A DNA stretch of 64,000 nt from Paraphysomonas bandaiensis (lineage: Eukaryota; Protista; Chrysophyceae): the NCBI GenBank assembly GCA_965644295.1, contig CBFFRP010000065.1:124001-188000 (forward strand), in the 5' to 3' direction. Position 1 is the stretch's first letter, and each line of letters starts with the position of its first letter. The notes below the pieces were generated by a model. That model was given only the letters and a program-made list of their open reading frames with translations. It was not told the DNA's origin and ran no database searches. Of this stretch, positions 9,094-61,918 are shown piece after piece. The translations under genes and the position numbers were made by a program.

Positions 9094-9495
9094 CCTGTAA
9101 GCCATTGTCATTCCACTTGTATTTAATAGTCTATTGCACGTCATATATTGAAGTACTATCAAATTAAAGATGAAATTTTTTCATGGTTTCATACTAATAA
9201 GAATTTGGTTTTATTATTAGCTCATACTTGCTGACATATACGAGGTCTAGGGAATGCTATCTTAGAAAGGAACTCGGAATAGTATCCTTTTTGTGAATAT
9301 CAGGGCCGTAAAACAAACAAAAGGGAATATGCTTAATCAATATTTAGCGGTTGCTGCAATTAATTGGCAGTTATTGCACTTATTTGATAGCAGCACGTAC
9401 TTTTCTACTTCAGACACCATTGGCAGCTGCACACCAGCTAAACGGTCGCTTAGTTCCATAGTTTGGATTCATGCGCAAAAGCATATGTATTTCTT

Positions 9496-9583
9496 CCCTC
9501 AACAAAGTCGGACTCGCACCTTTTCGTGGTGTTCTGGGGGATAAGTACCGGAGAGATTCTCTCTGGGAAACTAACGTGAGCCG
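9496..9583 (+). ncRNA. Putative HDV-like (Pr77-type) ribozyme fold at the retroposon 5' end, probably partly decayed
   Basis: Hand-folded: P1 CCCTCAAC 9496-9503/GTTCTGGG 9531-9538 (6 of 8 pairs); P2 CGG.CTCGC 9509-9517/GTGAG-CCG 9576-9583; P3 ACC 9518-9520/GGT 9528-9530; L3 TTTTCGT; GG 9539-9540; P4 9548-9555/9559-9566 (8 bp); J4/2 CTAAC with candidate catalytic C9571. Confidence 0.6.
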
Positions 9584-9995
9584 CAAACATAGTCAGCAGA
9601 TATTCTTCTGCCCACTCATAGCCGAATGCTTGTGTGGTACAAGGGACAAGGGACACCAATAAGTGTCACTTGTGTAGACGTCTGTGGGCCCTGACGAATA
9701 AACAGGCATCCGGGAATGGGCCCACCTCAAGGGCATCCGGGACAGGGCCCACCTGAAGGGTAACCGGGGTATTGGGCTGCCTGCTGAAGTCAAGCATTCG
9801 GGATGTTCACCTTAAGTACTCAGAGCGAAAGTAGTCGCACCTTGGTACTTGCGGCGACGCAAAAGCAGCTTCCGTAGCGTTAAATAGTAGGATAAAAAAG
9901 TGTGTACTGATTAGTTACAGGTAGAGGTCTAGCATTCATCTAGCTACTAAGTTGGTGCAGGTTTTTAACGCCTATTGCTAATAATAAGATTTGCA
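9496..9995 (+). mobile_element. Short (~500 bp) non-autonomous non-LTR retroposon, copy A
   Basis: Flanked by a perfect 13-bp direct repeat ATATGTATTTCTT (9483-9495 and 9996-10008). Homologous along its length to 37305-37671 (reverse strand) with the same 5' boundary. Its 3' part resembles 10600-10740 and the LINE 3' UTR 12840-12994. Confidence 0.85.
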
Positions 9996-10379
9996 ATATG
10001 TATTTCTTGGTGCCTAGGTGTAATAATTCGTGCAAGTCATTCAGCCTTTCAATCATAGCGGTAAATAAATGCCCATGATTTAAGCGGCGATACAGTATTG
10101 TATTATCTAAGTGAGACATACATCGATGTTTATATCCAGCTGCTATGCCAGGTTGCGCTTGTCGCCGTTATCGTTGATTATAAATCGCCGGAGTTATATT
10201 TTTCGGTACTACGGGTATATTGCTGTTTATTTCCACCTTAAATATTCATAACTCCTTTCTCAAATGCTACACTTTATGAACAAGTGCTACAACATCAGCT
10301 AACTAGCGTGCAATAACTGGGAAGCGATTTATTGAACGATACTTGCACTTTTTGCCTTATAGAAGAAGGTGTTATGACT

Positions 10380-10755
10380 CCTCCAGCTCTTCTTACGTCC
10401 AACTTATACACTGCAGTCAACGGCGCCCCGAAAGTCTACAGATTCTACGTCTCTACCTTACGCCATCCAACTTACCCTGGAAACATTATCCTCCCATCTA
10501 CATAACTCTGACCCTCCCTTAAGCTTCGCGTACCCCTGATTAACCGCACCTTGACACCGAAGGACTATACGTCAGTGGGCATCTCCCAGACACATACTCG
10601 AAGAGAAAAAGTGGTTGCACCTTGGTGCTTGCGGTGACGTTAAATAGTAGGATATCATATTTAATCTCCAGCTAGTTAAAATTGTCATGCTAAATTAATC
10701 CTAACACTTAAACGGCTATTGCAAATAAGAGGACCTTCACTACTACTACTTACTA
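10380..10755 (+). mobile_element. 5'-truncated 3' end of a related non-LTR element
   Basis: C-rich LINE-like sequence followed by GTGGTTGCACCTTGGTGCTTGCGGTGACGT-TAAATAGTAGGATA...CGGCTATTGCAAATAA...GACCTTCAC and a short TAC-repeat tail, matching the 3' end of copy A. Boundaries are approximate and no clear TSD was found. Confidence 0.6.
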
Positions 10756-10960: not shown

Positions 10961-13020
10961 TTGAGGACAACTACATGCATTTGCCAGAACCTTAGGTTCG
11001 AACATGTCAGAGGACAAAGTTCTCAGATTACAAAAGAGTATCTATGGGCTTAGCCCAAGAGTGCGGCATCAGAATACAACCTCCCTCCCCAGCTACATTG
11101 ACAAAGTCCAATCACAGCTACAACTGTACAATGATCACAAATATGCTTACAAAGCCATCTTCACGGATGGATCCTTCACACGCACACACCTCACCCCTGC
11201 TCACCTACTCGGCAACACCCACACACAGCCCAATTCTCACGACGGAGGAGCTGCAATTGTATGGCTCCCGCCCAAGAACACCTGGGGTCACAGACAAACC
11301 AAAATCCTACAACTTACTGCACCGCAGCACACACAGCGCCTGGCCTCAACGCCTACACCTACGAAACCCTTGCAATGTCAGCAGCACTGACATTCTCCAA
11401 TGTACTCCACTCTTCCGTGCCAATCTGGACTGACTGCCAGGCGGTACAGACGCGGACCAAAGAGGCCCTCTCACACAGACGGCGCACCCTCGGAACAAAG
11501 CCCCAGGGAATATTTTACGAATGCCTCGCCACCACAGCTCTTAAACAGCGTCCAATACAATGGACGCGCTCGCACCCCGAACGTAGAACACAAGATCAAA
11601 GCAACTGGACCTACACTGACCACGGCATTATTTATATAGCTGACGCCGCCGCCAGCGGCGATTGGAAGACACTAGACAAAGTGCTCGGAGCCTCCAACTA
11701 CAGTGTTGTCACAACTGACGCTACGCACATACTGGAAGAATTCTTCACCATGGGTCAATGGCACTGGCGTAGATACGATACACACCTCCTCACAGACCTC
11801 GGTCCTATGCTAGGAGACGTTACAGATCTCCACCACCACCCAGTGGGACCTCCATCACTACACCCTCCGAAGAGATAGCATGTATGCTGCACAAACGCAA
11901 CGAGACACGCAGTATTGGACACGCAGCGGAACAAGGCTCCCACACAAGCTCCATCCCCTCCGTACCCATAACTCCTCCAAACACTACATCCCCCTCGCAG
12001 AGCGTATACGCGAGACGGCATACGTATGGGACAAATCCTTTGCAATGGGTAGAAACCGAGCCAAAGGAAAATCCGGACATGATCGCACAACGGCTTCCAC
12101 ATGCGCAGACTGTGCACACCCCACAGACAACATGGCGCACATGCTTCTCACCTGCACTCACCCTGACATCATTCACATACGTGAAGATGTCCACCAAGCA
12201 CACCACAATAGGCTTTTGACAAACTTCGCACACGCACGCTCCCCCATCCCTGGTTTTACACCGCCATAACCAAACTAGCCAAAGCCGCATGGAACCCAAC
12301 CACCCCCCAGGTTGAGCGCTACTGGGCCGGCCACATTACTGCCACACAAATGGCCGACGCATTCGGACGCCACTTATCCAGCTCACTGCTCGAACATCAA
12401 TTCCACGCCCTAGAAAAATCCATCGCCTCTATCCTACTCCCCCTATATGATGGAGGGCTCCGCATGCTTCGCAATAGGGGACACAGACACCACAACGTGG
12501 ACACGGCACCGGCGACACCGATCCCGACACACGCAAAGCAACGCCAGCCCCAGGATACCCACCCGACACCAAAAGTACTCCAGCTACTCCAGGCGACATC
12601 CACCCCACGAACTACACTCTCTGCAAGAGCCCAGACCCGACAGAGGCAAGCGCAACCACTCCGGAAACAACTCCTCCTTACTTGTGGCCGAAACCCCACC
12701 TCAACAACCAGCATCATCTCCACCACCGACTTGCACTCTCATATACATCTCGCCTCACCCACCCCCCACATAATCCATGGCACAGGCCCGCCAGACACAT
12801 TGCCCAAAGGTAGACCCCCCGACTAACCTCACTACAAGGGACGGTTTCACCATGGTGCTCGCAGCGATGCACAAGCAGTCCCGAGACGGTTGCCCGCCAC
12901 TAGTAGTATATAGCAAATCTAGTTATTAGCTAGTCTATAGACATAAACTAGTTTCTGTACGCAACCGTACTCATGTAATAATCAGACTTTCATATATCTA
13001 TGGGCTTGAGTAATCCGATT
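10961..13020 (+). pseudogene. Decayed Ty1/Copia reverse-transcriptase fragment interrupted by a LINE (Copia parts 10961-11051 and 13008-~13020)
   Basis: YMHLPEP...EDKVLRLQKSIYGL before the insertion and GAG TAA TCC (decayed K-Q-S) after it reconstitute the RVT_2 motif YM..P.G...KV.RL.KSIYGLKQS. Confidence 0.65.
11052..12994 (+). mobile_element. 5'-truncated, frameshifted non-LTR retrotransposon (LINE) with RNase H and C-terminal CCHC zinc knuckle
   Basis: RNase H motifs across frameshifts: IFTDGSF, GGAAIV, AYTYETLAM, IWTDCQAV, WTRSHPER, IYIADAAA. Zinc knuckle CADCAHPTDNMAHMLLTC. ORF stop at 12826. 13-bp TSD TATCTATGGGCTT at 11039-11051 and 12995-13007. Strong C/A skew. Confidence 0.88.
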
Positions 13021-37304: not shown

Positions 37305-37671
37305 GTGAATGTCTGATTACTAGCAATAGGCGTGTAGCTAAACAATTTAATTAACTAGTGCTTAACTCTGATATCCTACTATTTAGCGCTAGAGGTGTAA
37401 CCACTATCGCTCTCAGCCCGGATGCTTGACTTCAGGAGGCAGCCCAATACTCCGGATGTCCTTAAGGTGGATCCATTCCCGGATGCTTGTTATTCGTCAA
37501 GGTCCAAAGACGTCTTGTACCACACAGACATTTGGCTATAAGTAGACAAAACGTTATCTGCTGACTATATATGCGGCTCACGCTAGTTTCAAGGAGAAAT
37601 ATCGCCCGTACTTATGTATTTATCCCCCAGAATACCACAAAAAAGCGCGAGTCCGACTTTGTTGATGGTCA
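37305..37671 (-). mobile_element. Short non-autonomous retroposon, copy B (older, internally deleted)
   Basis: Reverse complement reads CCATCAACAAAGTCGGACTCGC...TTCTGGGGGATAA...GAAACTAGCGTGAGCCGC...TAAATAGTAGGATA...CGCCTATTGCTAGTAATCAGACATTCAC, colinear with copy A. Degenerate 13-bp TSD at 37292-37304 versus 37672-37684 (11/13). Confidence 0.8.
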
Positions 37672-40324: not shown

Positions 40325-43300
40325 ATGGCCAAAGCACATCTTGAAAAATTGATTGCCACACATCTAGGCGATTATGTTCGTGAATATGATTCTAGCTCAC
40401 TTTCGGTAATTGATTTTAAGTGTGTGATTATTTGCTTTGTCATATTTGCTCTCAGATCGGAATATGGGAAGGCGATGTGAGACTTAGAAACTTGGTCGGT
40501 GCAGTAGATCGTTTGTTTTCAATTATGTATTGACGTCATGTTTTTAGGTGCTGAAACCCCAAGTTGTAGATATTGACGAGGATAGTTCCTTTAAGATAGA
40601 ACATGGCTTTATTGGAGAGTTGCGCTTACAGGTCCCGTGGACCCGCTTGCAGTCCGGCCATGTGAAGGCCAGTGTAGATGATGTTCACATAGTACTCAAG
40701 CCATCTGTAGAGTATAGCCCAGAGAATTTGAAAGCTAGAGAGAATAAACTGCATGAAGCAAAGATGGTATGCTTTGACTTGGAATCTGTATCTCTTTTTA
40801 CCATATGGGCAGGCTAAGCTAGACAAAGAGGAGCAACAGTTATTCGGAATGGCACCTACGTCACCGGATACGTGGACCGATAGGATAATGAATTCCCTGG
40901 CATCTTCGGTACTGTCGAATATTGTGAATGGGTTTTCTCTTTCTTTATCTCGGTGAGGCGCCTGTATTAGCAGTTGTATGGTAATAACTTATACTTGCAG
41001 TGTGAAAGTATCCTTCCTGCTTCCTCTCCCGGCACACGACGAACTGTGCCATGTCCGTCTCTCTGTTATGTCTGCGGTGGTAGAACCGTGTAACTCTGGG
41101 ATCTCGCAGCAGAAGGGTGAGATTCACCTTTTGGGAAAGCGTTTATCGGCGAGTGGTATCAGCGTGGATGTAAATCGTGTGTTCGACAGTGAGGCTTCGG
41201 ACCACTTTTCTCGAGATCCCTCTGCACCTCCTGTTGCTACTCACTCTCGAAGTTTGCATTCTTCCTTGGCTACTGCTGCTTTATCTAATGTTTTGGTGCT
41301 CCCGGCTCAGCTGACAGCCACGTTATTTGTTTGTGAGAGAGGAAATGAGGGCGGAGTAGTGTCTTCTCACCTGACGGCAGAGGTAGGATTCGGTCCGGTG
41401 GAGATAACTCCTCATGTACCCCACATGTATCTACTACGGGACGCACTGGATCAGTATACACGAGATAATTTTCGGCGGCGGTATTTGCACTTACGTCCAA
41501 TACAAAATCCCTCAAGCGAGTTGAAGAACGTAAAGGCCTGGTGGCTGTATACCATAAGCGCAGTGCTCATATGTCGGCGTGGACGATGCTCTCTTAGTAT
41601 GCAGGAATTGAAATCCGGAAAAAACGAGATATCGACGGCGTCACGAACCCAGAGCCGTATACGCAGCCGATATATTCACCTCTACCGTCAACACATTGAA
41701 AACAAATTGCGGGCCTTTGCTTCCCCTCTAAAGCCTTCTGCGAAGCAATGTCGATCTGGAGACGAACACAAGGAACAGACTAATAACAATATGGATGAGA
41801 GGTGGAAACTACCGCCCCAAGAAGCTGCGGAGATGGACGCACTTCATCGATCTACAACTTACGAGAAGCTTCTTATATATCGCGCAATGGTTCATCAGGG
41901 ACTTCAACGCGCTGGTTTTACTGCGGAGAAACTACGAGCAAGTGTTCAACACAGCCGCACACGTTCCTCAACCCTTGGGATGTTTGCATCGCACTTTTCT
42001 TCAGAAAGTACCGGTGCGATGGGAGCAACGGTAGATGGTACGTTTGTTCTGCCAGAAAGTCGTAATCTCACACATTGTAATATAGATGATATTGATGCTG
42101 AAATTCTCAACCTCTTTGAGACTGTTAATAGGCAAGCGCAAGAGGCTAGGCAGCATAATGAACTAATTCTGAATATAAAACTCTTTGCCCCTCGTGTTGC
42201 AATCTGTCCGCGAGAAAGCGTTGCATCTCATATGGAACACAGTGCCGGGAAAGTGGCCAGTGCAGTATCTCCTAAGTCTGCTGCTTTTGTTTTATATGGA
42301 TTGCAGGGCTCATTTGCCCAAGGCGAGCTATCATGTGATGGTACTGCGGTGCTCAGTCTGGGGGGGCTGCGGATGCATGGAATGGAAGGGGTAGAGTTGA
42401 TGTCGTGCGGAGAGAATACTGATGTATGGACACATCCACTGACTAGTAGTGAGGATAATAGAAAGCCGGCACTATTATTGACTTACAAATGGAGAATGGC
42501 TGATGCTGTTGGGGATGAAGATGCATGCAGTAGCCCCTCGGACTCCGATGAAGAGGTTAACACAATGCGGAATGCTATAGAGAAAATGAGTTACGGCCAC
42601 AATCAACACAAGTCTATTGATTTTTCTATGAAAACACTAAAAATTGTATGGGATGAATCGTCCATGGTTTATCTTATGCACCTCGCCCAAGAGTACTCGG
42701 AGAGGGGGCAAACCCATCTAGCCCCCGCATTAGCGTTAGTGACCAGCGTACATCCTTACACTGACATTCGGAGACGTTGTGCTCTTTATTCGAAGAACAA
42801 ATCGTATTTTACTGCAGTAGAATCAAATGCATCTAGTGTCACCTCTTGGAGTGCCAAAATGTGCGTTGAATCGGTGGTAGCTGCGTTTCCTTATGAAAGG
42901 TCGTCTGGTGATAGTGATGCGACAGATGTAGACTCAACGTCACGACAGGGTGTGTTGAGTATATCATCTGGTTCGTTTAAATTGTATGCTGGTGATTTTC
43001 TCGTTGAAATGGGTATGTTGGTGATTCCAGAATTTAATGACTCTCACCAGGCGGGTTGTGATTCATTGGGAGATATACCTACGCGATCTTTGTGGCCACA
43101 TGCAGACGAAATACTGAAAACTAAGCTATCTAAACTGTGCACACCGGTTATCCGCCCAATAGTTGTGCACTTGGAGAATGTAAATATTTCAATTGTATCT
43201 AATCATATAGGTGGCAGTTCATCTCCAATTCAACTTTTGAAAGCCCCATTTTGCTGCAAAGGAATAGTGTCACCGTGTTTGGTTCAGTGTCATGCAATAT

Positions 43301-46300
43301 ATCCCGATGTGCAGATTGACGTGTTTTGCTCACCTATTCTACTTAATATAACTCCAAAGGTACGCCGCCTTGAGCACCTAAATATACTACGCTAATTCTC
43401 TGATTCTGATGATAGGATGCGCTGGATATAATTGATGTCACAGCGAGCGTTACACATCTCTTTATGTCGCATTCATTGTCGCCGGCATCCTCATGTGATT
43501 CTAGTGGGAATTACATCAGTCAAAACACCAGATTTTCCCCTAGAATACGAACACTCGCACCTCTGTGCGTTCTGAAAGCTAGAATCGATATCGATGAAGT
43601 TAGTGTGACGTTGTTGTCTCCTGATAATATTAGAATTGAAGCTGCGGTTACAGAAATATTGACGTCTTATAGCTGCCATGTTCGGGATAGAAGCGGATTT
43701 TCTAGAACTGTGCATACCGCCGAGAGGCTTTCGATCCAGCAGCTTGGGAAATACGACATCGGATTCAGGGCTGCTGAGAGCGCCCTTCGTGGGGTATGCA
43801 ATGCGGTAGAGTCACATGAAAGTGATATTGATGGGGCCATTCGGAAACAAGTGCTGAGCCTCACAAAGACGTTGCCTTCTACTGTGGCACGCATCCCGAT
43901 TGTGTCTGTCACTTTACATGGAATTCATATATCTGATTACTCGCTGACCTATGACTGCAGAAAGGCACTCTATGTTGAAGAATTGCTTATCGCCGATCAT
44001 GAATGTTGTCCAGTAATCCATATTTTTTGTGATAATCAAGGACGTTACGATAATATGTCCGCACACAGTAAAGTTAAGGCATCTAACAGAGAACGGAAGA
44101 GAAGCAACGCGTCTTCTAGAAAAAGTTCGCGCCCTTTCATTGAAACGATTGCTAAGAAATTAGAATCGACCAGCATCTCATCATACTGTGCAATTGGTAT
44201 TGTATATACGGAACAAGATACCAGTTGTGGGTGGGGAGCAGGTGGTCACTCAACTAGAGTACTTTACGAGCTGTGGCCAGAAAGGCATACTCCTTTGAAA
44301 AGCGGAGAGTTTGTTGTTTCTTTAAAAAATGTAGATACGTTACTCTCTCTCAGCGGAATACCACAAATAATTAAAAGCGCTATTCCTATCGCAGCTCAAT
44401 TATTGGAACGAATTTCATCGTACCAACCTGGTGATCGTCATGGAGCACTGCCTTCAAGTCATGCGATGGGAAGCTTTGGATCAGATAAAAATTATGACTA
44501 TCGGCGTGGATTTCGTAAGACGTCGTCATATGACTCTGAATCTATGTTAGAAACTACCAATATATCGTCCCCAAAACCGGTCAACTCTGTGAAGTGCTCT
44601 TATCAAATATTAGTCGACTGTCTGCACGTGGTTTGTGCTGATGGCCCCCGTTATCTCGCTGAACTTGCAGTTACAACGATGAAAGCTAACTATTCATCAT
44701 CGCCGCAAGACAAGAGTGTGCGCGGTGGCAAAAAGGTGGCGCGTAAGATTTCACCCTCTCTACGCGTTGCTATCAGTACGTTGGACCTATATGATTTATC
44801 CCTGGCTGGCAGCAAGCACCCTACAGTGATATCAAAGAGTGTGACTACTGATGAACATATGATAGTTGTATCAGTAAACTTCGAGAAGAAAGGGTGCAAC
44901 ATGAAATGCTTTTTTAATGGAATGCGACTATGTATACTTTATCGGTTTGTGTCGGAGCTGTTGTCTTTTTGGATTACTCATTTTAGCAAGCACGTAATTG
45001 ACGAACTTAATAAATTTGAGGACACCATGCAAAAAATGAAGAGAAGTGATGATGTGCTGCCTCACGCTGATAACGATACGTTGGACTCGTTTGACTCTTC
45101 ATCGGAAGGTTCGGTCGAAAGAATTAATGATGGTGATGAAGTCTTGACGGGATTTTTTGAATATCCTAATGTTGGATTAGATGCGAGTGAGCTTGCACTT
45201 TTAAACTCTCAGACCAAGCACCGTGCATCTCTTTTTGGTTTGGACTACATAATGGCTGACCCACGTGATGTAACTATCACACGCACCCGTTCTGTTGATG
45301 TCAACGATGTTGATGGGCCGAGTGAGCCGACGAGGTCCTTGAAATACAAAATATCTTGGAGTATGGAATTCACTGATGTGACCTTGATTTTTCCACGAAA
45401 TTCGGCATGTGATGATTTGGCCGCAGCGAATATTGGGAGGTTGTCCATATGTGAGTACCAGCTCTCTCACAGCTGGGATGCTCCTCCGCCAGATGTGGAG
45501 ATGTCTGATAGTGATGAGGCAATATATTATGACTTTGACGAAAACCAGTGGATGAAAACTGGTCACTATTCCAAGTGCTCGGATAAACCCTCGACAAGAC
45601 CGCAGTTGTCACCATTCATTTTAAATCATAAAACGTCATTTGACGGCCATCATGTTTCTGGTAGAAAGCAGTTGTTCAAGTATAGCACAGAACACAAGGG
45701 GAGTGATATCTCATCGATTGCTTCGTTTGAGAGTAGTGGAAGTGTTGTTGATGAAGAGGAGTTTTTGAGTGCCGATGAAGGAGACGATGTTGACACCAAT
45801 GACCCTGCCAAGAAGAGTATATTTCTGAGCAGGCAGGAAAGTATAGATATCGATGAAGACGACTTCAAAGATACATTCGAGGAGCCTCAGCGTCCTGTGA
45901 TGGCAAGTGTGTTGTCATCTCAGTTCAGTAGTCGACCTACACCTCGGAACTACACTGAATGCTCGGATGGGGATGCTTTTTCTGAAGAGTCCTGTGACGA
46001 AAACAGTGATAATGTCGGCGCCGAATCAGTGTACCGGCTGGTCTTCAAATTTGAAAACGTCCAATTTTTCTGCTCCCTTGCATCTCGTCTCGATGTAGAT
46101 AGGCCTCCCGTAGACCATATGCAGACTATGTTCAGACGGTTTACGCATATCAGGCAAAACTATCCAGTGTATTCGATTGTCCATGCTCGTAAAGGGGGCG
46201 CAACGTGGTCAAAGCAGTCCTGGAACACGATATCGCTCTCTCCAACTAATATTTCGGTTGCTGTTGATCTCACTGAAACGGCAATGAGGTTTTTAATATC

Positions 46301-49300
46301 AGAAACTGAGCGGGCAACTCCTATGCGCTTGAGCGTCTCTATGGCAGAGCTTTACATGCTCCTCAGTATTTATTTTGACAACCTAAATGAAAAGGAAGAT
46401 TTCTTTTCCCCTGATACTCATCGTGGAAGTGGATCAGTGGAGAGTGTTGACACAGATGAGTTTGTCAGCGCCGATCGTCCTTTTTTTCCGCAGCATCCAG
46501 AATACGGGTCATCAGCATTTTGCGAATATGTACGAAATATAAAAAGCACTGTGGATTTTTTAGTTGTTCGCTCGGACTTAAATTTGAGGTGTTCTATGGA
46601 TGAGAGTAAGTATTTTGGATCAGAAATTCCATCGTTCAAGTACCTCAATATTGTAGAAGAAAATGATGCTCGCGATAAATATACAGGAGCCAAATATGAG
46701 TTTGCGAATATTCGTCTGCAGTGGTTTACACTTTTGTGCTGTATGTCTGATGATGTAATGCAAGTTGCTCTAGGAGTTGGTGACGCCAGTATTGTTGACA
46801 AGCGTAACCCGGATAGGAGTTTTTCGACAGAGGTACTTCGTACTTCTCCAAAGATTGTTGGGAGTGACTTATCGAACTCAATAAATGTCAGACACGGATA
46901 CGCAGATCTTGATTTCGGTCTCAGGGAAGGCCCGTCGAGTATTTATTGTCCGATCGACATACCTTTAAAAATAACATACTTCTCCACTGGTAATACGTGG
47001 GGTGTGACAAATATTGGAGCGAATGCGCCAGATGTTGATGTGAAGAATCTTGATATTGTGTGGCTATTAGTAGATTATTTTTCCAGTTACTTTTGCTCTG
47101 CCGTTTTTGGAAGTCCCTCTTGTGCTGCGTATTTCATGATGGATTCTAATGCTTGGCCTTATGGTGGCCTGGATACCAGAGTTTTTGTCGCAAGGCCTCA
47201 CATTCAAACCGTTGATAATACGGTGGATAAATATTGTCAAACTTTGGTTATAGAGGCAGACAAAGGTGTGTACTTTCGTTACATTTATGACACGATGCAC
47301 TCTGTGAAAATGGAAGTTCACGTATCTGGGCTGGCAGCCATGCTGTTGAAATCATACCGTCCACCCTCACAGGCTCGCGGATTGAGGGGTACGGCTGGTT
47401 CTGGGAGAGGGGTTCGTACGCTTATTGAAAACTTATCGGTGAAATTCAGCACTCACTTTGATAAGAAGGCAAATGTTGTGGACTATCTGGCCCATATGTA
47501 CCCGGAAACGTCTGCTGTGAACAGGAGCTCACCCTCTTATCAAAACGAGCATATCTCACCCACTACAAGTAATGACGATAAGAGCGATGCTGCTCATAAG
47601 CAATCGAACCCCTCCTATACTAATTTTGACGCCGATTGCCTTTTTCTTTCTGGTGTTCGTATACCATACCCAAAGTGTGTCTCTCGGCTCCATGTTCCCA
47701 CAGGGGATTTTCCAAAGCAATGTTGCCGAATAATTTCTAGTATTGAAGACATTATGTTTGCTGTAGCACTCGGAATAGAATTTCTTGGATTGGAAGAGTC
47801 CGTTGAGTATACAAGCTCCAATTCGAAGCTGAAGGTATTGATGTGACTATTTCATGACAATGCTAATTGTGTGTTAGAAATCGGACTCAGCTACAGAAAG
47901 AAAGACGGGCGTGGTAGAGCCTGTGATATTCGCGATATTTAGGATACAAAATGTAAAGTGCATGGTTGTGGACAATGTACTCGGTCTTCACCTCCCACTT
48001 GCTCAGGTAAATGTAAATGTTACATATATCTCAATATACTCGATTAATTTTCTGTAGCTCTTTCTGGCAGATATATCCGCTATAATAAACATTGCACCGT
48101 GTGATGATAGCCTCACTCCTATTCCAGTAAAATCTAGCAATAACACATCTGCAGCAGACTTGTCGAAGGAGTTATCACAGTGGACAGCTAATCTTCCCTT
48201 GCATCAAAGAAAAAGCTTCCGCTTAAGCAAACTACCTTCAGAGGATTCGATACTTCCTGAGCCTCCGTTGCACAGAGTAATGTCTATAGATGAATCACGT
48301 ACTCATATGACAAAGTCAGAAAAGCTCAAATCGGATATAAAGGCTTATGGGGAGGCTTTTATGTGGGGAGATTATTTCAACAGTATGCTTAAGTGCTGGG
48401 AGCCTCTTGTTGAGCCATTTACATTAACTTGCTTACACGACCAGGTAATTTGTTTATATTGTCTCAGAGTATGATACACTTCTTAACACTAACAACATGC
48501 AGAGTTCAGACAGAGGTTTGGGAGCGATTGTTAAATCAACAAGTCCAATTCATGTCAACATATCTGTTGCAATGATACGAACATTGAACGATGCGATGAG
48601 AGTTGTTGAAGAGCTCGGGATAGACAGGCGTGTTGAGGTGGGATTTATTTTTGCTCCTGTCTGCATTAAATTTGTTTTGTAGTATCAACAACATGATGAT
48701 GGGCACAGTCGTGAAGACGAACGCCTATCCGCGCAACCTGATCTCCCTCCGTCACGACGAAGAGCCTCCAGTGATGGAACAGTTTCAAACCTCAGAGATG
48801 GGGCATTTGCTCAACACCCTTCGCCGCAGCGAGAGGATCGCGTATATATGGTGGGAAGTTGTGATGATGAAGATGCGAACTATGGGTCTGTGTTCAGTCC
48901 TCCAAGCCTCAGGCGTTCCCTTTTCTCTCGACCATCATTGGCAAAACCGCATCTTTTGGGATTTCAGAATCACCGGCGCACTCGTGACTCCGTGAGTGCA
49001 GTCGCATCACATTTCACCAATGGCATTGAACACGTGGAAACTGTCCCTTTGAATAAATCAGCTAGAGTTGGGTTTTCTATATTAAATTTAACTGGTTACC
49101 CTATACGATATGTACAAGAGTGGGAAGACGGAAACCGGCAAACTATTCAGTATTTACAGGATGAACAGCGTGGACTTCTAAATTTTATTGCCTCAAACAC
49201 AATTATCCGAGATAATCGTATCGTGGAGCAGTCGTTCACTATGGATGCAGGGAAGTCCACGACGTTGAAGCATACCACTGGCCACCAAGTAGCACTTCAA

Positions 49301-52300
49301 GTGGCAGGATACAAATGGATACCAGCGCTACAATCTGACACTCTTGGAATCAAATTTGAGGATTTAACTTCTATTAGCGGTCGCATTGATCTCAAATCAC
49401 TTTACTCCAAGTCGAGCTCAATGAAAAATGCCATAAAGTTGGTCGCTGAAGTGAGACCACATAATGGTGGCAGGCTTTTGAAACTCAGTTCAGCGTTTGT
49501 TTTCAAGAATGCCACGAAACACACGATTAAGCTTTTGGCAAGCATCGAAAATCCCACAAAGATGAAAGGGAATATTTTAGATGTTCCTTATATGTTGCAC
49601 CCAGGAAAGTCGTTCCACGTCCCGATCAGCTTATTGTACAGAAGCGTGCTGCAAGGTAAAAAGGTAAAAGCAGATAGAGATGGAGAAGAGGTGCCCACTG
49701 CACTGGGTTTTATACAACTCTCACCTGCGGACAAACATATAATAGTGGAAGATTTAGGCGTGACATCCCAAACCGTGGGCGGTGCACAGTACGCCGAACC
49801 TGTGGATTTGATGAAGACAGTTATTCGCACGGAAGAGTTATTGAATGAAGCGATCGCGCGGGAGAACTTTGATGGGGTTATTGTGCACGATGGGATATAT
49901 CAGTTGGCATGTGAGTTGAATGGCCAGAGTGGGAAATCATCACAGAGGGAGCAACGAGATTCTGCGTCGGCATTTGACTCGCATCTGGATGAAATAGAAG
50001 TGGCTAAAAGCACACGGATTGTGCACTACGATAAGCTTCCACAATTTTGTTACAATATTGAGGTTGAGGCGAGTTGTCAGTCCAAGAAAATATTGAAGGC
50101 AATGGACGGCGATCAAGATGGGGCGGCTCCTAGTAGATTTAACCGCTTCTTTGGTTCGCAAAAGGCCAGAGAAGAAGCCGTATCTCAGTCTCCATGCACA
50201 TATAACATAGGTATAGCATGAAATGTCTTGTTGATTTTCTCTGATATCAGTCACAGTAATACACCCCCCAATTATAATTGAAAATCTACTTCCTGTAAAA
50301 GGAACATTTGAACTTGTTCATGACAAACGTGCAATCTGGAGTTCGTTGATTCATCCAGGGAAGTCCAGATGCATTCATACCGTCAGCTTGAATGAACCAA
50401 TTATGCTTGTGATTAATTTGGATTTTTGCTTACCTTCAGAAGGTGTATTGATACATAAGCCTCTTTCAAAAACTCCAGAAGATCGTGGCTTAGCAGAAAC
50501 CGTTATTGAAGGATTTAAAGGGCTCTTAGAAGATTCCGATTCATCTCTATCGGATTTGTCAATGATGCTTACAGACAATAGGGACGGTCAACGTCTGAGG
50601 CTGCAGATAGAAAATAAGGTAGGTGGCGGTGGTCATAGGAATATTGTGGTGTACTGTCCGTACTGGGTGGTGAACACCTCTCAGTACACTCTCCGCCTAA
50701 GAGAAGAGGGTGATCATCTGAGGTAAGTTGCTTGTTACTTTTATACTACAATATCAGTTTGGGCTACAGGGATGTTGGTAGAGTGGCAGCAATATCTGCC
50801 CCATCTACAAGTTCTGTTGAGACTATACCTCAAGGAACTAGAAAGCGCATGCAACGGCGCGGTGGAAATGAAAATTCGATCCCTCTCATGGAAGAAAGGG
50901 TATTTCCTGGCCGGCCTGGACCGCTTCATAGTTCACGTGTAAAAGAGATTGATGTCGACTCTCCTTTGCGAAATCTGCTCCGTGAGTTACGATTTGAACA
51001 GATAATGGAAATGGCTTCCCTATTTAATTTCGTTGAACCATCGGAATCTCGTCTAATTGGGAACCAAAAGGTGGTTGCCCAGTTAGAAGATTCTAATTGG
51101 TCTCGACCATTTACACTGGAAAGTGCTGGAGTAAATCAAGTTTTAAGTGTAGATTATGCTGAAATGGGAATGCTTGAACTTGCTTTCAAAGTTAGCAGCG
51201 CACCTGGAAAATGGGCGAAGTATACCAAGGTTATCCGATTTTCGCCACGATTTGTAGTTGTAAATAAGTTGTCGCGAGCGGCGAGGATAATTCAAGTCAA
51301 TGGGTTTTTGCATGAAAAGGTTCCTATCGATATATCGGCTGGACATTTGCGCCCATTCCATTTGCCTGCGGTTTTTGGTGAGCGACAATTGGCTGTGGAT
51401 GTGCAGGGACCGTGGATGCGTTCTGTCGCATTTGATATTGATCAGCTGGGGTCACATAATCTCCTATTGCGTAGGACGACTGACACGTCCAAACTGAAAC
51501 ACATCATAACACGAGGGAATCCAGAGTATGATGTTACAATTCCACATGATGAGCCAAGTATTCCCACAGATGGGGTAGGGATATGGTTTGAAACGGATTG
51601 GAGTCATAAGCAAATCGTTGTTATGCGAATTAAGCCTGGCAGTTTTGCTGCAACACGGACGGATGTACAGCACGGTGATGTATTGCTTGCCATAAATGGC
51701 GAGAGTGTTCGTGACATGTCTTTTGAAGAAGCAATGCAGAGACTTAAGACGCGTGACTGCAACGAGGATTGCGTGCTGACATTTCGAACCGTGGAGGAGA
51801 AAATGCGCCGAATTCGTGAGAATGTATTGAACGAAGGGAGTAATCCATCTGATGACAATTTATCTCAATTCAGTTCAGTTCGTGGTCCGCTCAATGCTAG
51901 TGCACTGGTACCAGAAGACGAAGAAAAAGAAATTGCTATCAAAGTTGAAATGAGGGCTGTTGATTCTAGTATATTCATGATTATATCTGATCTGGACAAA
52001 AATTTACGCCCTGAGTACCGAGTTGAAAACCGGTCATCATGCTATACGATTCACTATCGCCAGAAAGGTATATATAATGGGCGATGGACTACACTGCTGC
52101 CCGGTCTCTCAGCAACCTATATATGGGAAGACCCACTGAAACCTCATAAACTTTTGTTTCGAGTGGGAAAGAATATACTCTGCCCATCGAATGAACGATT
52201 GAATTCATTAGCGCTGGTAAATGACCACCCTCTAAGTTTTATGTCGGTTGGGTCTACTGACAGTCTGGTTACACAAGTACTATTTGATGAGATTGGGTAT

Positions 52301-55300
52301 GTCTGTCCTATACATGTTCCCGGTATGGACGGAAAGATGGTTGGTTTAGTTCAGTCGGAGGGACCGACGAAAGTTTTAACAATATCTCCTGATGTAAAAG
52401 TACAAGTAATCGAGCTGCAATATGGAATTAACTTCACCAACGAACAATTACTGGCATTGGGAGATCTCGCCGATCGTGTGCGCACTGTTTTGACTGATGG
52501 ATTTAACAATCCCAACAGCCATTTAGGGAAGGATGTTATTCAAAACTTGCTATTAGACATGCAGGATCAAACGCTTAAAGATATTCGATTACGACATGAG
52601 CGATGCCTGAAAGTGTTAGCTGAGCAGTACGCTGAATTGGACATCGACGATTCAACACGACACTCCATATGGACCACGAATCCTCGTATTGACTCAATTT
52701 TAGGGCCCGTTATCACGACGCAGAATACCATCATTGTGGAGGTCATTGAAGCCACTGGTTTAAAACCAGCAGTTCTTGGTGGCACGGACGAGACGTACTG
52801 TGAAATTAAGATAAAAAATCAGAACTCTAAGCACAGGTAGATACATACTGTATTTTGCGATTTGCTGTCATTGTGTTGTTACAGTCGGCTACACGAAAAA
52901 CTACAGAGTACTTATATCAATGATCAGACACTTGATCCATACTGGGTTGATCAAATATTCCTTTTCAGGGTTCCAGTTGATCCAGAAGAGTCCATACGAG
53001 GATATAATATTAGAGTGACAGTAAAAAGCCGATCGATTGTTGGTCTTGACACATTTTTAGGGCGTGCTGATATTCAGTTCAGTTGTTTGCACAAGGAAGA
53101 AGAACTGGTTGGTTGGTTTCCACTTAAGCCTAAGAGTTCTTCAGTGCAAACATCCCCAGAGTCACTACAAGTTAGCGGCTCTATTAAGCTAAGAATTCAG
53201 TGGGTTCATTCGGATAAAGGCCTGGTTAGTCATATTGACAAAGCGATTGGAAGGTGCGTTGCAAGAGTTGGCGTGTCCTTGCTTCGTATTATTTATCGTG
53301 TTTAATCAGGAGAAAAGAAGAGCTACTAGCTCATTTGCGCCGCCAACAAAGAGTTTTAAGACAGACCCAAAAACTCAATATTAACGTACCTGAGGTTCCC
53401 CAAAAACGGCTTCGCGTGACTCAACAGCACGATGGGTCATCACAATCTCTGCTTGGGGAATCGAGCCTATCTGACAGACGGTTGTACATATTTAATTGTA
53501 TATGTCTAACAGTTAATTATGTGTATGTAGTCAACGTCCCACTCGACTATCGTTGATTCGACAGTCGAAATCCAGTGTAATTAGTTCTTCGGCTAATTTC
53601 CCTGACTGCGATGCGTTTTCTGCTGTGCACCGGTACGTTGATTACTACCGATTGGTGTTACAAAGCCCACGACATTTATTGAAACGCGCTGACACCATGT
53701 GTCGGAGGAGAAACATCATCGCAGAAAATGAAGTATTTATGGAACGAGTTGAATCTGAAACATTTCGAAGTTTTACTCATGTCAATACAACGATGGGGCG
53801 GGTTGAAATCACACCCATTCAAGCACTAAACTTACCAACCTCAAGGTCAAATTCTAGCTCAGATAACCCAGTTTCTGTAAGATTTACCTATGGCGATGAT
53901 ACTCAGAAAACTTTTAGTGCTCGTCCAACTGCACACCCTGTATGGCTGAACACTGAAAATGGTTTGGATAAGCAAGCAAGTGACCCTAGCGTTGACCCAA
54001 GTAAGAGATATTCCCGTAGTTTAGGGGCCTCTCGAAGTCCGAAGAAAACGTCTGCACCTCGTACTGTATACGATAATCTGACTGCTATATTTGATATTGA
54101 TACATTGAACATAACGGGCAATATAGGCGTGTCTGTTCGTCAGCAAGCGTTTCCCAAGCATCGTGAAGTTTGCAGCCTTGAACTGCCTATTTTCAGCCTG
54201 CTGGACTGTATTTGCACCCTGAATCACGGAGCTACATATGACAGATGGTTTCCTCTCCGGATTTCAGCTGAATGTAAACCGATTGAAGGCGATATGGGAG
54301 CTTCACTACACCCTAATTCATCCGAGAAAATGTACAGTAATCTCTTTGAATATCACCCATGCATTCGTCTGCTGATTCGATGGCATGACTCATCTGAAAT
54401 GCGGCGTGATCGCCGAACATCAACAATGTATTGTCGAGTTCATGTCCCAGCCTTTTCTTTATCAATAATAGACTCTAATAGAGCTCGCGAAATTATGCAG
54501 ATTGTAATAAGTGACATTGAAGGACGCCACTCAGATTCGCTTGAGTTCACAGAGAGTAGTTTAATTGTGTCATGGTTACAGGTGGACAATCAACTTCCAG
54601 AGCCGGTATCTCCTGTTATTGTGGCACCAACGTCTGTACTGCGACCGCAGCCTGCTTTACGGTTGCATATCAAGAAGAACAATATCCTTTCGCACGAGCA
54701 TTTGGAGTCTTTTGAATTCATTCAATTAATTGTTCAAGAATTGGATTTGCATCTGGAACAGCAAACAGTGGTCGCGGTTTGGGAGTTTATACAAACTGTT
54801 ATGACAACAATATCGACAAGGGTGAAAGATGATGATACTAATGGTGGTGACCATGAGCATGCGAATCGGCAGCCTCTCCACCATCCAGCTGCTGCGGATA
54901 CAGATATCGATAAAATATATGTTGATCACTTTTACATTGCCCCGATAATGATTAAAATATCTTTTATTATGACTCCTCAAGCCTTGTCAGGATCTAATTC
55001 TCGTTCTGTAATAGGGAAGACTGGAAATTATGGCGGTGACATTCCAGTCGGAGAGCAATCGTCTGTGAATCTATTTTTGTGGCAAGTTGGAGAAGTGGTA
55101 CTGGATTTAACATCAACCATATCGGACGCTCCTATTCGACTTAATGGTATGACTGTGAACCATCTGTTTAAAACTTGGAACGAAGTTACATCTATACTAC
55201 AAGATCATTACCTCAACACAGCATTGGGTCAAATGTATAGGATTGTTGGATCATTGGATTTGGTTGGTAACCCAGTGGGGCTATTATCTTCACTTGGTGT

Positions 55301-58300
55301 TGGTGTTCGCGATTTTTTCTACGAACCGGCATATGCATTGATATCAAGCCCAACAGAAATAGGTAAAATTGGAAAAGGGGTAGTGAAGGGTGCCGTTTCC
55401 CTTGCAAGTAATACAGCTGATGGTTTGTTGGGAACGGCTACCACAATGACACGGTCTGTTGGAAAAGGGGTTGCAGTTTTGACTATGGATGACATATTTC
55501 TTCGAAACAGAGATCGTTTGAATAAACAGCCCGAGAATGCAATGGGATTTGTGGTTAGGCCAGTGAAAGACATGGCGAATGGCATATACTGCGGTGTTGT
55601 CGGTGTAGTTCGAGTTCCTTATCATGGTGCCAAACGTCATGGAGTTGCCGGATTCGTCACTGGTGTGGGAAAAGGGGTTGCTGGTGTTGCTGCTAAGCCC
55701 GTTGTGGGTGTTTTGGATGCTATCACACATTCAGGTGATGGTGTTAGGTATGGGATGAAGGTGTTGATGAAGCGGAGTGGTTTGCCTGTGAAGAAACGAC
55801 GCTACTCGAATTTGTTTGGACCCGATGGCCGACTCATGCCGTACTCCTACACCACTGCATATGGGTCCCATATGCTACGACTTCAAGATCAGCTGTTCTG
55901 GGAGACTTCCACTAGCAGGGCGCGCCTTATGTCTCTCGGTCCAGACAATAGATCATTGAAGGATACTCCAGAAAACTCTTTCAAGCGCTTATCTAAAAGA
56001 AATTTGCTTGCTGAACCTCCCACGTCCAGACGGGGTGGTTCCATCATGGGATCTCTACTTGGTACTTCTGTTGATGATGACTCAGCGGCTCCAGCGTCGG
56101 CAATATCTGAACAATCGCAATTTTCTCTAATGAAAGCTCGACGTACCAGCTTGTCAATCGGCCATTCTTCAGATATGAATGAATTAGAATGTGTTGTATA
56201 CACGGCTATTATCAATAGATCCGTCGGGCACGATCAACTTGTAGTGGTGACAAATGTACGGGTAGTAGTTGGTGATTTTAAACGCGAAAAGAGTGGAAAT
56301 TCGGTAACGATTAATTGGCAGTGCAAAATCAGTGCTCTGAAAAGTGTATCACTAAATAGGATTCAAGGGTGCACGTCAACTTTGACTTTGATTGCATCTG
56401 TGATTTCTAAGTCAGCGATACGGCGACAAGATGCTGCAAGCGAGGCATCGATAAGCCTCAGTGGCGATTATGACGTACTGCGCGAATTACACAACTGTTT
56501 GAAGACTATAAAGTACAACTTTGATAGTATTATTCCTCTCTATGAAGGGGATGACACTTGGGAAGAAGATGAACATAATATCATTAGCATTGGCCCTTGG
56601 CAATATCTCCGTAGGCAGGTGAATGATGAAGATGAGTATGACAATGATGCTATTGTCGCTAAAATCAAAAGGCGAAAGTTGATGGAAGCCCTTGAGGTGT
56701 GCCCATGGGTAATAAATCCAGACCCCCAGAATGAAACAGGCGGAGATATTGCTACTTGGTTGCAGGATGATCGTGAAAATGTTATACAGGCTCACTCTAA
56801 AATCAAAGAGTACATGGATAAAGGAATAGCACGGATGAATGACACACCAAATGAACGAATGTGTAAGGAGCTATTGCGTACCGGAAAGGCTAATGGATAT
56901 GAATTTGACGCTCTGATGGCGACAGCTGTCCGTGGAAAGGATCTACATCTTCCGTCATCGGCGTGTGAGGATTCCAACGCGAAGCAGGGTGGTAAAGCGA
57001 AGTCGCAAGGAATATCAGGCCCAAACCCCCTTGAGGTGGCGAGGAAGCTGCGGAACACTGTACGAAGAACTATAAGTCGATTTACTGCACCAACTGACGC
57101 CGAATCCTGTGATTTACCCCCACATAGTCCCGTCTTGACGCACGCGGCATCAACGGGCAGCGCTCGAGGGCTTGGTAGCACCAAGTTGTTTGCCACTTTG
57201 AGCTCTGATAGTAATGCACTCGAGAACTCGCCTGTTTCAGGCGACGATAATGACGAAACTCGTGCTAGTCGAGCAGCATCACTTCCGACTCGCAGGTTTG
57301 TGCCGTACACAGCGGGCAACGGAAACTCTTTTGAAGAAAAATCAGATGATGATGTGCCATCGACTGTACTCAGTCTTGACGAGCGCACGCTGTCGAATTC
57401 TTCCAACAAAGGTTTTAGCATTGTGTCAGGGTAAGTTTTTGTTTATATACTACAGGTTACTTATTGTTTTATAGATATGATAGCCCCGACGGGGGCGAAG
57501 CGCGGTTATCTGGAAGTCCACTGCTTTCATCGAAGAGAATTAGTGATGGTTTGCGAAAGACGGTTGCCCGATTTAGTTCGCAGTCTGCTTCCGAACCACG
57601 GTTATCACCTTTGCCTCCTAATTCTCCGCACCCGTCTTCTGGTTCGGTAGAATCATCAGTAATTGGGGATCCACTGAAAAAACGAAACGGAACCGAAAAG
57701 ACTCAACATAACGGCAGCACACCATTATCGATTTTCAGTCATGTTGAGGATGAGCAACCGGATGAGCAACTGGATGAAGTGGAGCCTGACTCTTCGTCGC
57801 CAGGGGCTACACATATAACTAGAGTGGCTTCGCTCCCAACTCTGATGGAAATAGTGGAGCATGATTCATGTGATGAGGTCAGTGATCGATCTGCCGATGG
57901 TTTAATAACAAGAGAGGAAAGTCAAAGTCCTCCGATATCGATAAGATCAAAGAGCAAAGAAGTTAAGAACGATAAAAATTCACGTATGTCGAATGGATAT
58001 TTTTCAGTTCCCGCACGAATACGCGACGATGAATATTCTCATACGAACCAGTTGGAGGACGGACATGGGTATGTTGATTACTTCATGATTTTGTAGTCTT
58101 GGTGGTAATCATTTCTTTCAGTGACATAGGGGATGTTATATCGGCTTTGAGTAACGGTAACGATATCTCACAGTGCGCGAGAAGGTGTTAACATTTGTTT
58201 GATAGTGACCGGAGATTCGACGAGAATGGTTGAGGTTATGGACAGACTCGGAAGAATGGAAAACCTTCTAACGTCTATAATACAGAGGTGGTATATTTCC

Positions 58301-60761: not shown

Positions 60762-61918
60762 ATGGATCCTACTAATATCCAGGACATTTTGCCTGCATTC
60801 ATGCAGCAGATAAGGCAAGAAACACAAGAGAACAATGAAAGGCTGACCAGAGAAACACAAGATAACAATGATAGGCTGACCAGAGAAATAAAAGAGATTA
60901 ATCAGAAAATGGACGTCAGATTTCAAGAAATACTCAACGCGATCGGGCAACAATTGAATAGCATTACAGAGCATACGGACAAGAAAATGGAACAGTTTCA
61001 CAATGATATTACGGAGAGACTGGATACACTGGAAGCTAGAACAGCCATCCTGGAAGGAGAGAAAGAATTAACGGAGCAGCAGGACAGGGCAATTACCCAC
61101 CCGAGTGCGTCCAGGGAACGAAAGACCATTTTTATGAGGGAAGTGGAAGAGACCACGCACCTAGCGGAGAGAAGACTAGTAGTGGTGCAAGTGCCCACGC
61201 CATCTCATTCACACATATTCCGCCAGGTCCATTAAATCTAGGAATATGTGTGAATGAGATGGCGTGGGCATTTGCACCACTACTTGTCTTCTCTCTGCTA
61301 GGTGCGTGGTCTCTTCTGATTTTTGGTGTGCATGGAGCAATGACTCTCATACTTCGGAATCCCCTACATTGCAGCGCGTGCATCACCTACTGAGTTTGAG
61401 TAGCTAGAGATTTTCAACAGATTTTAGGAGAGGAGATCAAACCCACCCCTAACCATTTGCAGCTCACACCAACGGAGTGTTTAGTTCAGGTTCACAATGC
61501 CCAGGTCGGACACTGGGGAGAGCGCGAGACCTGGAGAAGACTGAACAGGGACTTCATTGGGCACGGCATATCCCAGCGAAAAATTAAGGACTATATAGAC
61601 AGATGCGCAAATTGCCAGAAGTCCAGGAGGGAGATGAAAACTCGGCTGATTCCTGTGCAGAGACACTTGAAACCTCCATCACACAGGACTGCAATTGGTA
61701 TAGATGCATTAGCTATTACACCCCAGGGAACGAGTGCGTCCAGGGAACGAAAGACCATTTTTATGAGGGAAGTGGAAGAGACCACGCACCTAGCGGAGAG
61801 AAGACAAGTAGTGGTGCAAATGCCCACGCCATCTCATTCACACCCCAGAACACCACGAAAGGGTGCGAGCCCGACTATGTTATACCTCAACCATAAGAAT
61901 TCTAAAATTTATTTTTAA
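60762..61918 (+). mobile_element. Rearranged Ty3/Gypsy-like LTR retrotransposon relic (gag-like coiled coil + integrase fragment)
   Basis: Integrase zinc-binding HHCC (VHNAQVGHWG...IDRCANCQK) followed by the first core Asp (IGIDAL). Upstream coiled-coil ORF has a 33-bp tandem duplication. RT and RNase H are missing; internal direct and inverted duplications are present. Confidence 0.8.
61146..61316. repeat. 76-bp inverted repeat (fold-back) with 19-nt loop
   Basis: 61241-61316 is the reverse complement of 61146-61221 with 3 mismatches. Confidence 0.92.

Follow-up and report, generated by a model that had tools for sequence, protein, structure and literature searches.

The locus considered here raises the question of what fixes the first base of a short retroposon. 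The window, by which we mean the whole 64,000-nucleotide stretch of the Paraphysomonas bandaiensis assembly that was analysed, carries a TSD-flanked element of about half a kilobase, and a sequence-only reading of this DNA had placed an HDV-like ribozyme fold of the Pr77 type at the exact 5' end of that element. The blocks from which the fold had been drawn, namely the TSD, P3 with its loop L3, an 8-bp P4, the CTAAC motif and a P2 with one bulge, were all recovered at the positions given for them (Table 1). The strand order of a nested double pseudoknot, P1-P2-P3-L3-P3'-P1'-P1.1-P4-J4/2-P2', is present, and the alignments to the two covariance models described below (R1 and R2) span all of its blocks. 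The C-N-A-A sequence that precedes P2' is likewise found, with C9571 lying in GAAACUAAC.

Table 1. Features of the retroposon with its probable ribozyme head and of related elements in the window. Base numbers such as C1 or G45 count from the first base of the element.
Feature	Position	Strand	Evidence or remark
Copy A, non-autonomous retroposon of ~507 bp (ribozyme head, body and LINE-derived tail)	9496-9996	+	TSD-flanked
5' TSD of copy A, ATATGTATTTCTT, 13 bp	9483-9495	+	Repeated at 9997-10009
3' TSD of copy A, ATATGTATTTCTT	9997-10009	+	Second copy of 9483-9495
HDV-like (Pr77-type) ribozyme module	9496-9583	+	Best window match of Pr77-only models; predicted cleavage immediately 5' of C9496
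P1 5' strand, C1-A6, preferred register	9496-9501	+	Probably pairs with 9535-9540; R2 alignment and duplex energy
P2 5' strand, CGG(A)CTCGC, A9512 bulged	9509-9517	+	8 bp, including one G.U, with 9576-9583; R1 alignment
P3 ACC/GGU and L3 UUUUCGU (7 nt)	9518-9530	+	ACC 9518-9520, loop 9521-9527, GGT 9528-9530
Extra GUU(C) between the 3' strands of P3 and P1	9531-9534	+	Atypical feature
P1 3' strand, U40-G45	9535-9540	+	R2 alignment and duplex energy
P1.1 partners A46 and U47	9541-9542	+	A46 with U9523 (U28), U47 matched with U9522 (U27); class rule
P4 hairpin, 8 bp, loop AUU	9548-9566	+	
J4/2 GAAACUAAC, with putative catalytic C9571	9567-9575	+	CTAAC at 9571-9575; class motif GAARCYAA, Pr77 motif GAAGCUAA
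P2 3' strand, GTGAGCCG	9576-9583	+	Pairs with 9509-9517; R1 alignment
LINE-derived 3' region and tail, ending ...AAGAYTTNCAATAT	9815-9996	+	Aligns with the LINE 3' end at 12830-13000
Partner LINE copy, 5'-truncated	11052-12995	+	TSD ATCTATGGGCTT at 11040-11051 and 12996-13007
Copy B, older, internally shortened, ribozyme core mutated	~37309-37668	-	

The element belongs to a large and uniform SINE-like family. A search of the whole 62.5-Mb assembly gave 3391 first-look candidates, and the 40 that were scored all start at query base 1 or 2 and run full length at 91-94% identity. With up to three mismatches allowed, the first 54 nt recur in the genome at least 563 times, while a reversed-pattern control returned none, which is more than chance would give. 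Among 31 full-length copies that were fetched, all share one 5' end, which reads CCCTCAAC in 25 of them and a variant with one or two changed bases in the other six. Most of the 31 continue this into the longer start CCCTCAACAAAG, the first eight bases of which vary by one or two in six copies, and nearly all close with ...AAGACTTTCAATAT(A). The TSDs measure 6-16 bp where they were found in these copies. In 22 of the 31, an exact TSD lies directly against C1 with no extra base, and most copy junctions are without untemplated bases, which bears out the placement of the fold at the precise 5' boundary of a TSD-flanked retroposon. The same boundary is visible in DNA-like runs of related strains, where 12-16 contigs break at 9496 into unrelated flanks. 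Two poly(A) marine metatranscriptome runs from one sample (X15 and X16) also contain the family, with the unique flanks absent from their Logan contigs; all of these run data are assembled Logan contigs, which carry no molecule-end information.

The copies differ from one another by 2-6% everywhere, with the head no more conserved than the body, and the changes seen in older copies resemble random or CpG decay. Covariation within the family, which had been suggested as a check of the fold, was consequently uninformative, the copies being too similar: the sole compatible change is that in P4 of a second subfamily, which keeps a shorter, clean hairpin at this site. For copy B, the reported order of blocks was confirmed, whereas positions of its ribozyme core proved to be mutated, and it is unmatched by the R2 model at E<=10.

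Several further repeats accompany the family. SINE copies are found nested in other SINE copies (L008, ~1496-2059; L017, 2019-2171), which shows recent activity, and one nested insertion, with TSD GGGGGATAAGT, sits inside the ribozyme head of another copy. In the window, a piece of the ribozyme head, 48 nt long and situated at ~61886 on the minus strand, adjoins a repeat cluster at 61102-61843, which is composed of direct and inverted repeats, among them a 113-nt direct repeat spaced 629 nt apart and 76-nt arms that are 96% complementary. Between copy A and the LINE fragment, positions 10590-10745 contain the 3' portion of a further short retroposon that is related, with the tail ...AAGAGGACCTTCAC. 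Beyond the repeats, a run of long ORFs at 40978-57434 on the plus strand matches the VPS13 adaptor-binding, PDZ and VPS13 C-terminal domains, and these ORFs probably represent one large VPS13-like gene that is split by short introns.

In order to assess the likeness of the head to Pr77, two covariance models were built, R1 from P2, P3 and P4 and R2 from P1, P3 and P4. Both were constructed from L1Tco(78), TvSIDER1(94) and LmSIDER2A(81) only, the sequences being taken from the supplement of PMC4035085 and the element's own sequence being excluded. These three ribozymes, from T. congolense, T. vivax and L. major, respectively, are active in vitro (PMC4035085). Both strands of the window were scanned with filters off. 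The best R1 match is 9496-9584, covering the whole model and scoring 15.6 bits (E 0.027), although a spurious second match reaches 15.2 bits; the best R2 match is the same interval, again over the whole model, which scores 17.7 bits (E 0.015), and the next match drops to 8.9 bits. The resemblance to Pr77 that the sequence-only reading had pointed out is recovered, if with modest scores, by models made from Pr77 alone. When the R2 scan was extended genome-wide, it returned a single match with an E of 0.5, and the window score is not significant at this scale. The blocks that the element and Pr77 have in common are ACC-U..(N)CGU-GGU, the run of G residues that closes P1, the AGUAC before P4 and the GAA(G/A)CUAA before P2'.

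Two other computations were less telling. The nested minimum free energy of the head is no better than that of shuffled sequences (z = -0.19), which is expected for a pseudoknot and gives no support. A scan of the element against Rfam 15, both at the gathering cut-off and at E<=10, produced no match to an HDV-like family (HDV, CPEB3, drz-agam and others). The Rfam scan had been put forward as a means of recognizing the fold, yet its negative outcome is uninformative for the element because canonical members of the class described below are equally missed, none of those tested matching at E<=1.

A wider frame for the comparison was obtained from metagenomes. Metagenome contigs were searched for a pattern of the bases that Pr77 and the element have in common; at least 120 contigs matched, and more than 110 HDV-like ribozymes were retrieved, a figure that is a lower bound. 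Among the matches listed, the distance from GGT to AGTAC is exactly 10 nt, corresponding to a 7-nt P1', in 109 of 117 unique matches, and a perfect 7-bp P1 complement lies just upstream in 78 of 102, as against 11 of 102 with a shuffled P1'. Pairing in P2 and P4 is also far above that of shuffles. When 49 class sequences were aligned by the Pr77 model, 94% of the cells were paired, compared to 65% in shuffles; the covariation score was 0.73 rather than the 0.18 of shuffled alignments, with none of 500 shuffles attaining that value, and each of the seven P1 pairs varies in both of its partners. The genomic setting of these sequences is that of mobile elements: the flanking sequences of a repeated soil family cease to match at the very base with which P1 begins, and several class members are located directly upstream of LINE ORFs encoding APE and RT, in some cases with RNase H. 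Downstream of the ribozyme, two loci (L087 and L110) carry an APE-RT ORF of ~1000-1100 aa, and a third (L157) carries an ORF1 plus APE-RT-RNase H. Judged by these sequence patterns, this is a real ribozyme class which would head the retrotransposons of many uncultured eukaryotes, and not a trypanosomatid speciality.

The class also furnishes a rule for P1.1, which was derived without the element from distinct metagenome families (loci L060-L179). In 55 of 55 families, the third position of L3 is the Watson-Crick partner of the base that immediately follows P1' (U-A in 31, C-G in 19, G-C in four and A-U in one), and the base after that one has the pyrimidine of L3 position 2, again in all 55 (U/U in 29 and C/C in 26). 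Pr77, with UCA...UC, obeys the rule as well. The match at position 2 may represent a non-canonical Y.Y pair within P1.1 or a correlation by lineage. The core that is shared across the class can be written as ACC-UYNNCGU-GGU, a 7-nt P1', NN-NAGUAC, P4 and GAARCYAA, with P1.1 made up of one Watson-Crick pair and a covarying U/U or C/C. As a separate observation, the U/U or C/C match persists while the adjacent Watson-Crick pair of P1.1 takes several different forms.

The element shares about 21 specified bases with this class core, and its L3 is identical to that of three metagenomic members (L090, L099 and L157), while its R2-type Pr77-model score of 17.7 bits falls under those of all class members (21-57 bits). 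The resemblance might in principle be accidental, a GC-balanced 88-mer happening to allow the drawing of a double pseudoknot. The nested fold energy, which does not surpass that of shuffles, the almost equal R1 runner-up and the want of significance genome-wide would all sit comfortably with such an accident. It would, however, have to place the top match of both models at the exact first base of the element, among 128,000 possible positions, as well as supply the ~21 class-core bases and satisfy a P1.1 rule to which the element had contributed nothing, and we regard it as very unlikely, the least probable of the explanations considered here.

The P1.1 rule furthermore helps to settle how P1 is paired. 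The L3 of the element, UUUUCGU, predicts that P1' is followed by AU; this dinucleotide is found directly after G9540, an arrangement compatible only with a P1' whose last base is G45. The P1 that results is composed of C1-G45, C2-G44, C3-G43, U4.G42, C5-G41 and A6-U40, that is, six base pairs with one G.U and no internal mismatch. This shifted register is the one chosen by the R2 model, it also appears in the centroid fold, and its duplex energy is -8.7 kcal/mol, as opposed to -5.7 for the register that had been drawn in the sequence-only reading. In the latter, GG would intervene between P1 and P1.1, both class rules fail and the duplex is 3 kcal/mol less stable. From the sequence, then, the shifted register is probably to be preferred and the original drawing of P1 to be given up. 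The accompanying view that the copies are decayed is not upheld either: the marks on which it was founded, TT in place of CC in L3 and a 2-nt mismatch in P1, are not signs of decay, since they are features of the family consensus and either disappear or turn regular once P1 is shifted.

What does set the element apart is the connection between P3 and P1. The GGU and AGUAC motifs are separated by 13 nt in the element, as compared to 10 in the class, and GUU (9531-9533) plus an unpaired C9534 stand between P3 and P1; no such extra bases were seen in the ~110 class members sampled. The canonical 10-nt spacing has only two matches in the same genome (G000:C168:31203-31230 and G000:C126:23841-23868). 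The first of these reads GTTCAGG-AT-AAGTAC, with TTTCCGT as L3, and from its sequence could retain an ancestral-type 7-bp P1 (CCTGAAC/GTTCAGG).

An insertion of this sort leads to the question as to whether the head is still a ribozyme or a relic of one. In the latter case, the three extra bases and the short P1 would have inactivated it, and the common 5' end would stem from the +1 position of an internal Pol II promoter, as for Pr77 in Trypanosoma cruzi. The uniqueness of the insertion among ~110 class members and a model score that is low relative to the class are in line with such a history. Pr77 itself is a documented dual promoter and ribozyme (PMC3383444), and many of its copies are catalytically dead (PMC4035085); a single P1 mismatch nearly abolished Pr77 activity, and some well-folded copies were inactive (PMC4035085). 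The side of the molecule that bears the active site is, on the other hand, intact in the element, where C1-G45 followed by the P1.1 partner, L3 and the C of J4/2 all keep to the class rules. The insertion falls at that end of P1 which is remote from the active site and adjoins J1/2, a segment of variable length, and to judge from the known HDV architecture may be tolerable there. Moreover, base 1 itself is where the complementarity of P1 begins, a placement for which a promoter has no need, the known Pr77 promoter factors are described for trypanosomatids only, and untemplated bases are missing from most junctions. Overall, we consider the relic explanation unlikely, while ranking it well ahead of the other alternatives.

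The family could also be taken for an ordinary Pol III SINE, in which a degenerate tRNA, 5S or 7SL head only happens to resemble a ribozyme. Its size and its construction from head, body and LINE tail are typical of such SINEs, as is the presence of many uniform full-length copies. Nevertheless, ARAGORN finds no tRNA in the element, Rfam returns no tRNA, 5S or 7SL match even at E<=10, and neither an A box nor a B box is visible. Two T runs, T4 at bases 26-29 (9521-9524) and T5 at 9962-9966, ~30 nt before the 3' end, would in addition stop Pol III short of the tail. The Pol III explanation is largely refuted by these results and retains a very small probability.

The tail of the element connects it to a LINE of the same genome, to the 3' end of which the last ~180 nt of the SINE align. 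A long copy of this partner LINE (L045:376-7782, in G000:C426) encodes a 2468-aa ORF with SET, APE endonuclease and RT domains, followed by a second ORF. The relatives of the partner LINE are metagenomic proteins, and three of these (P0001, P0003 and P0005) display the same combination of SET, APE and RT. The SET domain, which is histone-methyltransferase-like, is positioned upstream of APE and RT; to our knowledge, no SET domain has been known in a non-LTR retrotransposon. Other LINE families in the genome are relatives at 77% and 69%.

The 5' end of the partner LINE was of particular interest with regard to the origin of the head. It was located at L056:3853-4250 (G000:C426:349852-), is common to four other copies and consists of ~165-bp tandem monomers, which are reminiscent of the promoter monomers of mouse L1. 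In other copies (C44 and C207), a unit of ~400 bp from this end is repeated two to four times. Searching the LINE 5' end (L056:3853) with the R2 model revealed no ribozyme module. The idea of a head common to LINE and short element, after the manner of ingi and RIME, consequently failed for the partner LINE examined: the SINE and this LINE share the 3' tail only, and not the head.

Taken together, the evidence supports a reading in which the head is a homologue of the Pr77-type class of retrotransposon HDV-like ribozymes, to which, on sequence grounds, we would assign a probability of about 0.9. That the head still cleaves itself and in this way sets the 5' end of the element is a further step, which we favour with less assurance but somewhat beyond even odds. 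The sequence of events would be as follows. The element, which has no evident promoter of its own, would be carried within longer Pol II transcripts. In these, the head would fold by pairing C1-A6 with U40-G45 in P1 and U28 with A46 in P1.1, together with P2, P3 and P4, whereupon C9571 of J4/2 would act as the catalytic cytosine and the RNA would cut itself just 5' of C9496. The LINE-derived 3' tail of the released 5'-OH RNA would then recruit the endonuclease and reverse transcriptase of the partner LINE for target-primed reverse transcription, and copies of an RNA cut by its ribozyme and primed by the LINE would therefore start at the same C and be flanked by TSDs of 8-16 bp. We infer that it is this particular LINE that mobilizes the family.

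A broader proposition, which we advance tentatively and hold at a little short of even odds, is that Pr77 would belong, as a single branch, to an ancient superfamily of HDV-like ribozymes in retrotransposons, conserved in sequence, that heads RTE-like as well as I-like LINEs of many uncultured eukaryotes from soil and sea. In that case, the SINE would have captured its head independently of its LINE partner, and this head would work with a slipped, insertion-bearing P1.

Systems of this type are already known (PMC6765202, PMC3414825), and the processing of retroposons by ribozymes is established for insects, trypanosomatids and other metazoans. What is new concerns the host, a P1 that is slipped and bears an insertion, and a head that is unshared with the partner LINE. 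The literature on Pr77 that was searched deals with trypanosomatids throughout, with nothing found outside them, and the literature searched on HDV-like ribozymes yielded none linked with stramenopiles. The present family adds a very abundant and young retroposon with a probable ribozyme head from a marine protist outside the kinetoplastids, and it places the 'trypanosomatid' Pr77 signature within a far broader class that goes undetected by current Rfam models. The EF-1 gamma of this host is identical to an MMETSP/EukProt transcript, its best named relative being from an ochromonad at 59%, and the sequencing runs that contain the sequence are of marine origin. It has already been argued that the usual HDV-like descriptors are too strict (PMC4035085); should the head cleave despite three extra bases between P3 and P1, the structural envelope for HDV-like searches would widen. 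As regards annotation of this genome, the proposed ribozyme would explain the one exact 5' end of several hundred short repeats (up to a few thousand by the rough first-look count), and it flags possible cleavage sites inside host transcripts.

Among the known self-cleaving elements, the comparison is most distant for those of another ribozyme class. The hammerhead of the schistosome Sm-alpha SINE and the twister-variant non-LTR elements similarly place a self-cleaving RNA in a short retroposon, the Sm-alpha SINE being Pol III-driven (PMC6765202, PMC8501958). The genomic HDV ribozyme, the structure of which is solved, is closer in its architecture: it resembles the element in strand order and in a 3-bp P3, L3 terminates in CG(N)U in both, and in J4/2 NAA comes directly after the catalytic C, which is putative in the element. 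Three traits of HDV are lacking in the element, namely the wobble G1.U37, a P1.1 made of two G-C pairs, and a P1 of 7 bp that abuts P3 without a gap.

The RTE and Baggins elements carry HDV-like ribozymes and lack a promoter, being freed from host co-transcripts as is proposed for the present family, and many copies have, as here, conserved downstream and variable upstream sequence (PMC6765202); structure searches had found 'hundreds of intergenic copies' of HDV-like ribozymes (PMC6765202). These RTE/Baggins ribozymes are described in metazoans, and the corresponding Rfam models (e.g., drz-agam) match neither the element nor the canonical metagenomic members. In R2 elements and their SIDEs, an HDV-like ribozyme makes an exact 5' end from a co-transcript, as is proposed here, and what the short derivatives retain is the ribozyme together with the protein-binding 3' end (PMC3414825), just as the present element combines a ribozyme head with a LINE tail. 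R2 is, however, rDNA-specific and employs a restriction-like endonuclease, unlike the system of the element, and the heads of SIDEs come from their own LINE, whereas the head studied here is unrelated to the 5' end of its partner. Furthermore, the Pr77 type is set apart from the ribozymes of R2 and HDV by the G-C orientation of P1 and by P1.1 (PMC4035085).

The Pr77 ribozymes of L1Tc/NARTc, L1Tco/NARTco and the SIDERs remain the nearest counterparts, being also the first ~80-90 nt of a non-LTR element, with cleavage 5' of base 1, where it is predicted in the element (PMC3185411, PMC4035085). Differences between the two concern the host, a marine protist that is not a kinetoplastid rather than the trypanosomatids; the three extra bases between P3 and P1 and the 6-bp P1 of the element; its 3' end, ...CAATATA in place of poly(A); and its partner LINE, which is without the head, while in L1Tc/NARTc and ingi/RIME the LINE and the short element have it in common. 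The two are nonetheless alike in a P1 that opens with C residues paired to a G run, in the ACC/GGU of P3, in the motifs of L3, AGUAC and J4/2 given above, and in a spacer of 7 nt before P4 (AUAAGUA in the element, UCCAGUA in Pr77). In both, P1.1 contains a single Watson-Crick pair, which is U-A here and A-U in Pr77, and in both the module forms the head of non-autonomous derivatives.
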